A stretch of DNA of 63,807 bases, counting the filler, from Octopus bimaculoides (lineage: Eukaryota), in assembly GCF_001194135.2 (NCBI RefSeq). It is 5 parts of 4 records of this genome, joined end to end, with 100 filler letters (N's around TTAATTAATTAA, not from the genome) between each part and the next. Parts side by side here need not be neighbours in the genome. Positions count along the whole stretch, not along the records: positions 28,494 to 46,186 come from NC_068985.1; 4 more parts are not named here. One strand, 5' to 3'. The notes below the pieces were generated by a model. It was not told the DNA's origin and searched no databases. It worked only from the letters and a program-made list of their open reading frames with translations. Shown here piece after piece: positions 35,296-37,821 of this stretch (positions are counted from its first letter, which is position 1; each line of letters starts with the position of its first letter). Both the position numbers and the translations under genes were made by a program.

Positions 35296-37821
35296 ATGAA
35301 GCTCACGTGGTTCGGACGTTCCTTCACAGTTACAACCAGATTTTTGTTTTTAACTCAGAGAATGTAAAACGCTGTTGCCCCACATAAATTTCTTTCTTTC
35401 ATGTTTTCCCTGAAGTAGAACTCTGCCCAAACGTTGTTACCTCCACTCCTCAGAACGAGTTCTCTGTAGTCCTTTCTATTGATTTTGTTATGAAGTCCTA
35501 CAAAAGTAGAAAGCAAAGTTCAAATTTACAACGATTAGATGAAAATACCACTAACTCTTCCTTTTTTATTCACAATGAATCTCTGCCACTCTCTCTCTCT
35601 ATCTCTCTCTCTCTCTCTCTCTCTCTCTCTCTCTCTCTCTCTCTCTCTCTGTTTCGTTCTTTGTCTTTTTACATGCAACTTCTTGACAGGTTTCTTTATT
35701 TAAACGCAATTTTTTTTTATTCTGAAACGACGCCGTAAGCTTCATATATATAGGAAATGTTGTTGTTTCAAGAGAATTCACATGAAGAGTCTTGCAAAGA
35801 GAATACAAAAACGATCTACCAAATTTATTACGTCACTATTACGCTTACACACACACACACACACACACACGCTATACACACACACACACACACACACGCT
35901 ATACACACACGCTATATATTTACATACAAATATGTATGTATGTATGTATGTATGTATCTATCTATCTATGTATCTATATCTATAAATTGATAATAAAAAG
36001 GCGAGTGGAGATTTATTGACCCCCAAAACATTTTATCAAAAAGCTTTCTACAGCATATATAACATTTACCTACATATGTTTCGATTGCAGTGACTGCACA
36101 TTGCTCTGAATATAATTATGCACCGTAGTTGCTGCAATTTCATCAAGGGTCCATCACTCACCACGCTTTCAAAGTGAACTGATTCAAACAATTTGGACAT
36201 TAAAAGATAATAAAAATGTGTATTCGAGTGCTTGGGAAATAAGGCAAAATCTTATAGAATAGGCGATGATAGATGTGACTTTTGCGTGGAAGAAATGTAT
36301 CAAATTTTCACTTCTAAATTTACTCTTATAAACTCAAGTCAGGAAAACAGGCTCTAAGATGTCCACACTTGAGAAAATATACTCTTAACAATTTAAGTAA
36401 ATGCAACTCACCATCTATAGTAATTATGCTAGTTACAATAATAATTGTAATAATTAATGACATTTATACTACTACTACTACTACTACTACTACTACTACT
36501 ACTACTACTACTACTACTACTACTACTACTAATAATAATAATAATAATAATAATAATAATAATAATAATAATAATAATAATAATAATAATAATAATAATG
36601 ATAATAATAATAATAATAATAATGATAATAATAATAATAATAATAATAATAATAATAATAATAATAATAATAATAATAATAATAATGATAATATTAATTG
36701 AGGGTTTAAATTCAAAATGAGTAAAATACCTCTGATTAAATAATGTACTTCATACAGCAAAATGTAATCAAAACTGCTACAGTCAATTGACATCTGAATA
36801 AACATGCTAAAATCATGCTTCAACTGTAATACCAGTAGAGGTGATTATAAGACTAGAATTCCATTGGATTTAAGAAGTAACGCTATCACCTTCAACTGAA
36901 TACCAACGCAGGACGCTTTTTTGAATCAGTTCAGTTTGAAAACGTCGTGGACATCTGATGAAATTGCAGCGACTACGATGCATAATTGCATACAGTGCAA
37001 TGCACAGTCGATGCAGTCGAAACATGTGTAGGTCAACTTTATATATGCTGTAGAAAAGGTTTTGCTAAAAAAAGTTTTGAACGTGAATAGATCTCCGCTC
37101 TCCTCTTCATTATCAATTTATACTCTACAGAATATTTGAAGTTCTGAATAGGAACACAGGACACCCCAACGAGTGAAGCTTACCAGTACCAGTATCTCTT
37201 TTAAGCTTGAGGACTATGTATTTGGGCCGTTGTGGATAGCCGGCATCGATACCAATTTGTGAGATATATGCACGCAGACACGCGCACGCGCACACACACA
37301 CACACACACACACACACACACACACATACGCATATATATTTTTCTATATGAACATATTATTCTTTTATTCTTTTACTTGTTTCAGTCATTTGACTGTAGC
37401 CATGCTGGGACACCGCCTTAAAAAGAGAAAGAATGAAACAGAGAGAGAGAGAGAGAGAGAGAGAGAGAGAGAGAGAGAGAGAGAGAGAGACAGACAGACA
37501 GAGACAGAGACAGAGACAGAGAGACAGACAGACAGACAGAAATTCATCGTGAATGAGACAGGAATAGTAAAGTTTTCTGAAAGAAAGACAATTGTGAAAT
37601 TCGTTATGGTATTTTTATCTAATCATCGTAAATTTGAACTTTAAAAAGACTACAGAGAACTCGTTCTGAGGAGTGGAGAAACCAACGTTTCGATAGAGTT
37701 CTACTTCAGGGAAAACATGAATGAAAAAATTTATGTGAGGCAGGAGAGTTTTACATCCTCTGAGTTAAAAACAAAAATATGGCTGCAACTGTGAAGGTAC
37801 GTAGAACCACGCGAGCTTCAT
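35296..37821. repeat. Large degenerate inverted duplication (foldback)
   Basis: Three nested colinear inverted blocks: 35296-35471/37648-37821, 35515-35670/37420-37642, 35981-36188/36920-37122; (ACT)n(AAT)n near the centre. Confidence 0.85.

Follow-up and report, generated by a model that had tools for sequence, protein, structure and literature searches.

An old, decayed inverted repeat in the Octopus bimaculoides genome as a possible relic of one local inverted duplication

Hyper-editing of double-stranded RNA (dsRNA) formed from repeats is general in Metazoa (PMC9989829), and octopus carries more than 1 million hyper-edited sites together with an exceptionally high genomic density of dsRNA-forming loci, most of which are neighbouring inverted repeats (PMC5625713). 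Long inverted repeats are also known as the hairpin RNA (hpRNA) loci of Drosophila, which are defined by Dicer-2-dependent small interfering RNAs (siRNAs) of 21-22 nt and usually derive from the genes that they target (PMC10317233); in 32 surveyed molluscs, Octopus bimaculoides among them, no evidence of endogenous siRNAs (endo-siRNAs) came to light (PMC12479628). Here we analyze a long inverted repeat at positions 35290-37829 of a 63,807-nt stretch of O. bimaculoides DNA (the window, composed of five joined parts of assembly GCF_001194135.2), within the 17.7-kb piece from record NC_068985.1 that occupies positions 28494-46186. An earlier note on this DNA had described the locus as a degenerate foldback and had offered a Foldback-type element, a Penelope-derived inversion and a hairpin-RNA locus as candidates. 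We find a non-coding stretch of ~0.9 kb that occurs twice, in opposite orientations, around a spacer of ~0.7 kb, and the whole looks like a feature of a known kind, an ordinary relic in repeat-rich DNA and not a gene or special machine. Whatever its origin, this decayed inverted repeat is very probably non-functional. As to how it arose, a single old local inverted duplication that has since drifted neutrally is the reading we favor, and we hold it with about even confidence.

A gapless repeat finder and self-BLAST each recovered inverted pairs between the left arm (35290-36192) and the right arm (36916-37829), and a gapped global alignment of 35250-36470 with the reverse complement of 36690-37870 shows the arms to be reverse complements of each other, colinear and with the same nested order of blocks. 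The repeat finder recovered the arm pairs 35316-35394/37724-37802 (87%), 35387-35475/37644-37732 (89%) and 36031-36153/36948-37070 (82%) and paired the (CT)n and (AG)n tracts in many registers, and self-BLAST joined 35289-35666 with 37828-37456. Both the inverted, colinear blocks that the earlier note had reported and its estimate of ~540 nt of alignable arm are borne out, the alignable columns adding up to ~541 when the 92-nt CT tract is included. The arms, their blocks and the spacer are listed here without strand.

Outermost lies block A, whose left copy (35297-35475) matches the reverse complement of 37644-37822 at 163 of 184 positions (88.6%), with perfect runs of 21, 27 and 31 nt between the arms; its inverted right copy extends over 37644-37829. 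The local alignment of this block scores 96 standard deviations above shuffled sequence, and the window contains exactly two occurrences of a 31-mer that the arms have in common, where none is expected. Block A2 follows at 35514-35579, preceded by 38 nt (35476-35513) that only the left arm contains, and matches its right copy (37575-37643, read from 37643 down to 37575) at 50 of 61 positions (82%), with indels specific to each arm. Next come the mirrored microsatellites that had been noted before: the (CT)n tract with its conserved 3' flank (35580-35671) mirrors the (AG)n tract at 37419-37510 and shares with it a perfect run of 54 nt. Tandem Repeats Finder (TRF) calls (CT)31 at 35589-35650 and places the tract of the right arm at 37440-37540; there the feature as a whole (37419-37574) continues beyond the (AG)n copy into an (AGAC)n-type extension and unique insertions, ~70 nt of sequence present only in the right arm. 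Beyond a middle segment that differs between the arms, block C (35982-36192) matches the reverse complement of its right copy (36916-37122) at 167 of 204 positions (81.9%), and its local alignment stands 75 standard deviations above shuffles. Blocks A and C consist of unique sequence.

The limits of the homology are sharp. Its outer ends fall at 35290-35297 and 37822-37829, where the termini read TTCACGTATGAAGC... and ...GCTTCATTCGGGAA, and no inverted homology continues outside the arms when 34900-35289 is compared with 37830-38220 (z = 1.9). Inward, the arms stop at 36192 and 36916 and enclose a 723-nt spacer (36193-36915), in which a compound microsatellite of (TAC/ACT)n and (TAA/AAT)n, called by TRF as (TAC)21.7 at 36467-36531 and (TAA)56 at 36530-36698, is set between 260 nt and 220 nt of unique sequence; the (ACT)n(AAT)n centre previously described is thus present. 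Between the two halves of the spacer (36193-36452 and 36696-36915) no inverted homology is detectable (score 10 against a shuffle mean of 10.6, z = -0.4). Of the 2.5-kb extent first given to the foldback, the outer ends stand as described, but the structure does not run through to the centre. The remaining 14 kb of the piece showed no further arm copy, whole or partial, by self-BLAST or by the 31-mer count.

Between the arms we count 69 substitutions and several arm-specific indels, and these differences bear directly on the possibility that the repeat is a false inverted duplication introduced by a chimeric read or a mis-join during assembly. The one run of N in the piece, a 747-nt assembly gap at 33532-34278, lies 1 kb upstream of the repeat and identifies the sequence as a gapped draft, which speaks for such an error. 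With (TA)n/(TATG)n to the left of the gap and (CA)n to its right, the scaffold breaks within a microsatellite. Artefactual foldbacks give near-identical arms, whereas the arms here have accumulated the substitutions and many indels, each holds a segment of ~300 nt of its own, and no gap interrupts the repeat. We regard the chance of an artefact as virtually negligible, in keeping with the earlier judgement that the locus is free of internal gaps, has diverged by substitutions and independent insertions, and is old rather than an echo of assembly.

Segments of similar length and unrelated sequence break into both arms at one shared point, which follows ...CTTTTTA and precedes TATAAATTGATAAT.... 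The left-specific segment (35672-35981, 310 nt) consists of unique sequence followed by (AC)n and (TATG)n, and the right-specific segment (37123-37418, 296 nt) contains unique sequence, (CA)18 at 37291-37326, AT-rich sequence, and a fragment of a short interspersed element (SINE). No inversion relates the two segments; what they have in common is a (CA)n-TATATATTT microsatellite that lies on the same strand in both, so that both carry (CA)n on the plus strand. They could represent two independent events at one AT-rich site or the variable middle of a repeat family.

The SINE fragment (37368-37418, minus strand) is a 5'-truncated 3' end of ~50 nt that abuts the point at which the arm homology restarts. 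Over 50 nt it reaches a local alignment score of 40 with the terminal portion of a nearly full SINE copy at 44356-44750 (minus strand), and these are the only two places in the piece where the 3'-end motif occurs. Since the fragment is limited to the right arm, at least one insertion was specific to one arm. We take the copy at 44356-44750 to be a SINE that is abundant in octopus and carries a (TG)n/(TA)n stretch internally; a full-text literature search returned no paper that mentions its 3'-end motif.

Divergence between the arms by the Kimura two-parameter distance amounts to 0.124 in block A, 0.21 in blocks A2 and C, and 0.173 overall, or ~0.087 per arm. Identity does not differ significantly between A and C (Fisher p = 0.066), a result that one event would accommodate. 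Under the Octopus vulgaris calibration, in which a Jukes-Cantor (JC) distance of 0.09 corresponds to ~25 million years (My) and 0.2 to ~56 My (PMC13282606), the duplication would date to roughly 24 My ago if the rate derived from that species holds.

The pattern of the differences also speaks to function. Among 449 aligned positions outside microsatellites, 380 would form Watson-Crick pairs, and the 69 mismatches divide into 37 transitions and 32 transversions. In a plus-strand RNA, 13 of the mismatches would be G:U and 24 would be A:C, with the two counts exchanged on the minus strand (binomial p = 0.10), and almost half of all mismatches break pairing on both strands. The enrichment for G-U pairs that the earlier note had suggested looking for is accordingly absent from either strand, and the spectrum looks like that of neutral decay, with no sign of selection for pairing on either one.

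Folded with ViennaRNA, 35290-37829 forms a long hairpin on either strand, with ~510 arm-arm pairs and a minimum free energy of -874 kcal/mol for the plus strand and -1042 kcal/mol for the minus strand. As separate hairpins (plus and minus strand, respectively), block A reaches -249 and -271, block A2 -46 and -51, the CT tract -149 and -151, and block C -220 and -224 kcal/mol. Over the aligned blocks, then, the strands differ by only ~34 kcal/mol in total, and most of the strand gap in minimum free energy must stem from sequence outside them; we considered the lower energy of the minus strand as a sign of the transcribed strand and rejected it for this reason.

These results allow us to weigh whether the locus is a functional long hairpin-RNA gene, whose transcript would fold and either be diced into endo-siRNAs that silence targets or serve as a regulated ADAR substrate. 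The in silico folding on either strand agrees with such a gene, the block hairpins (-46 to -271 kcal/mol) lying far below controls in which the right arm was shuffled (-16 to -89 kcal/mol), as do perfect duplex runs of up to 31 nt, and of 54 nt in the CT/AG tract, and hyper-editing in octopus is exceptionally strong (PMC5625713). Folding is nevertheless no proof of function, because any inverted repeat folds, and the duplex is broken by two bulges of ~300 unpaired nt and by arm-specific indels. The mismatches show no bias toward preserving pairs, with 32 of 69 being transversions and no excess of G:U on either strand. No match of the arms to protein-coding sequence was found, whereas Drosophila hpRNAs typically arise from target genes (PMC10317233), and molluscs, including O. 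bimaculoides itself, have yielded no evidence of endo-siRNAs (PMC12479628). We thus judge a hairpin-RNA gene very improbable and do not retain the hairpin-RNA or endo-siRNA candidate; equally improbable, in our estimate, is a version specific to the octopod lineage, in which the repeat would form the core of a long structured RNA acting as a source of Dicer-dependent small RNAs or as a regulated neural ADAR sink. A more modest role is plausible. The arms would form a long, mostly paired intramolecular duplex within a few kilobases (380 of 449 positions Watson-Crick), and a transcript that included them could be a passive ADAR substrate, which would be ordinary for octopus.

We found no coding or RNA-family signal in the repeat. 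Pfam searches covered 34400-35600, which takes in the left flank with blocks A and A2, in its three plus-strand frames, and block C together with the left flank of the spacer in all six; they returned nothing relevant. Nine selected stop-free arm peptides of 30-65 amino acids, joined as one query, had no match at E <= 0.01 among 5.8 billion proteins, which argues against arms derived from a gene; this search has no bearing on copy number, the window's own open reading frames (ORFs) also being missing from that database. The previous statement that no ORF explains the foldback is upheld by these results. Look-ups of the exact products of three ORFs of the window returned no record, and no gene model emerged in the piece. 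An Rfam scan of 28494-46186 at E <= 1 produced only sub-threshold matches to microsatellites, mostly by miRNA and snoRNA models, and ARAGORN detected no tRNA.

The same searches bear on a Penelope-like element with inverted pseudo-LTRs (long terminal repeats), under which the arms would be inverted copies of an end of the element. What speaks for this possibility is a plus-strand frame at 34699-34908, 400 nt to the left of the repeat, that reads NLIYCIICKSCGALCVGETYC*ACK...FHHSFGNVQHH and that by eye we took to resemble a decayed GIY-YIG nuclease motif, an assumption that the searches did not support. Pfam recognized neither GIY-YIG nor reverse transcriptase in this frame or in the tested arm frames, a word-indexed search of the frame recovered no relative, and exhaustive HMMER searching gave only three weak multi-stretch hits (E ~1e-4), of which two have the unrelated Pfam domains Endonuclease I and PKD-like and one has no Pfam domain. 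Moreover, the motif falls beyond the limits of the repeat, nothing to the right mirrors it, and no hammerhead ribozyme was found by Rfam in the piece (28494-46186, E <= 1). Penelope-like elements are present in octopus genomes (PMC13282606), but with each search of 34699-34908 negative or irrelevant we dropped the GIY-YIG reading of that frame. With no reverse transcriptase or GIY-YIG remnant in or beside the arms in the frames searched, a Penelope-derived inversion is largely refuted and in our view very unlikely.

The alternative that deserves the most weight is a transposon origin, which could take either of two forms, each followed by decay: an uncharacterised interspersed repeat of ~0.9 kb that inserted twice at full length, the copies facing opposite ways 0.7 kb apart, or one 2.5-kb non-autonomous DNA transposon with long terminal inverted repeats (TIRs), foldback-like or a long-TIR miniature inverted-repeat transposable element. 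We consider this a real possibility that falls short of probable. The ends of the two arms coincide on both sides, as full-length copies of one family would, and the piece is packed with repeats, including LINE reverse transcriptase ORFs, the SINE at 44356-44750 and an inverted SINE-like pair at 39727-39908/40622-40802. Set against this, the insertion signatures of transposons could not be found. For the whole repeat, no target-site duplication rises above chance, the best flank match being 5/5 to 5/6 within +/-12 nt; the left arm alone gives nothing, and the right arm alone gives at best 6/7, likewise not above chance, with random position pairs in the same scan reaching at least 6 matches in 50% of trials. 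No TA, TTAA, TWA or 8-9-bp duplication marks the homology limits, and on inspection the termini (TTCACGTATGAAGC... and ...GCTTCATTCGGGAA) match no transposon superfamily signature known to us. Nor is there a transposase, reverse transcriptase or other coding remnant, or any further arm copy, whole or partial, in the remaining 14 kb. TRF detected no tandem subrepeats as building units of the arms, which hold only (CT)n, (AC)n, (TATG)n and (AG)n microsatellites. Without such subrepeats and without a target-site duplication above chance, the Foldback-type candidate of the earlier note finds no support. An exact 29-mer from the arms had no match in metagenome contigs, a null that is uninformative because a control 25-mer from the abundant SINE of the piece also gave none.

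A one-step local inverted duplication is suggested on the following grounds: none of the four ends shows a target-site duplication, the piece contains two copies, the limits are sharp, the spacer is unique, and transposon features are lacking. Several points weigh against it. The count of two copies is limited to the 17.7-kb piece. About two-thirds (~66%) of the genome is repeats (PMC13282606), and most nearby inverted pairs are two copies of a transposable element (PMC5625713), so that the prior favors a transposon; neighbouring inverted repeats also make up most dsRNA-forming structures in animal genomes (PMC5625713). The per-arm divergence of ~0.087 coincides with the peak of TIR and Helitron expansion in O. 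vulgaris at JC 0.09 (PMC13282606). Under a simple duplication, unrelated segments of ~300 nt at one position require two further events, so that a repeat family whose middle varies would be the simpler explanation of them, and a short target-site duplication may have decayed beyond recognition.

If the repeat did arise by one local inverted duplication, its history might be reconstructed as follows. A non-coding unit of ~0.9 kb, ordered A, A2, (CT)n, middle and C, would have been copied once, in reverse, 0.7 kb away, most likely by a template switch during replication or repair in microsatellite-rich DNA. Both copies would then have drifted, acquiring ~17% substitutions, arm-specific indels, microsatellite growth and, in the right arm, at least one insertion of a SINE fragment. 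The locus would encode nothing and have no activity as a unit. Were a transcript to span it, the arms could pair into ~500 bp of imperfect dsRNA with large bulges and undergo hyper-editing by ADAR, a passive consequence of the arrangement. Inverted repeats with a long spacer and diverged arms are genetically stable, as studies of repeat instability have established, and the 723-nt spacer together with an arm divergence of 12-18% may account for the persistence of this one.

Other features of the piece place the repeat in its surroundings. The SINE-like repeats at 39727-39908 and 40622-40802 form another inverted pair of smaller size, with 67% identity over 182 nt and ~700 nt between the copies, which shows that such arrangements are common here; a third fragment of the same repeat lies at 40480-40560 in plus orientation, and we presume the pair to belong to an abundant octopus SINE family. 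Two ORFs of a LINE (long interspersed element, a non-LTR retrotransposon), at 31121-31642 and 32215-32493 on the plus strand, encode the C-terminal region of a reverse transcriptase. For the first of them, 175 relatives are found at E <= 1e-10, some with a precomputed Pfam RVT_1 assignment; the best, at only 67% identity, comes from Mb-sized contigs of the ENA assembly ERZ25878469, of which two contigs have no DNA in common with the piece, not even its SINEs. A further plus-strand ORF at 46100-46186 is cut by the edge of the piece and ends ...DVTVLVSSQKHIELVGETLKDYETVTGAKINRD; we take it to resemble a stretch of LINE reverse transcriptase. Self-complementary blocks of AT-rich and CA/TG-rich microsatellite at 29651-30252, 37952-38210 and 39155-39431 appear as palindromes in self-BLAST and draw sub-threshold miRNA matches from Rfam, but they are of low complexity and not structured RNAs. 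A (GAT)n-rich low-complexity tract at 41089-41316 yields poly-Asp or poly-Ile ORFs on two strands.

The locus adds one more decayed inverted repeat to a class from which most of the dsRNA hyper-edited by ADAR in animals, and particularly in octopus, is drawn. With arms ~17% diverged, it offers a clean, dated example of the decay that such repeats undergo by substitution, indels, expansion of microsatellites and SINE insertion, and it illustrates that inverted repeats of this size persist once the spacer is long and the arms have diverged. Hyper-editing pipelines could be tested on this locus if it proves to be transcribed, and small RNAs, if any arise from it, would bear on whether molluscs truly lack endo-siRNAs.

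The locus can be compared with several described systems. With the hpRNA loci of Drosophila (PMC10317233) it shares a long inverted repeat able to form a hairpin of several hundred base pairs, but hpRNA arms are highly complementary and usually derived from target genes, whereas the arms here are 82-89% identical, carry large bulges and match no gene. Foldback and other long-TIR transposons, such as FB and Galileo of Drosophila, are generally known for the architecture seen here, with inverted termini of 0.9 kb making up most of a 2.5-kb unit without ORFs; the repeat differs from them in having no target-site duplication, tandem subrepeats, recognised terminal motif or transposase. Inverted segmental duplications with a spacer, generally attributed to template switching or fold-back repair, resemble it in their two arms, unique spacer, sharp limits, microsatellite-rich context and lack of a target-site duplication, although at this locus such a mechanism is only a proposed one and the middle segments at a shared position call for extra events. 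The inverted Alu pairs of primates and the inverted repeat pairs of octopus (PMC5625713, PMC9989829) differ from it in that its arms have no assigned repeat family and are seen as two copies in the piece, and its duplex falls short of the nearly perfect structures that the octopus work emphasises (PMC5625713). It is like them in consisting of two diverged non-coding copies that lie in opposite orientations within a few kilobases and that could pair in one transcript into long, imperfect dsRNA, for which neither copy would need a function of its own.

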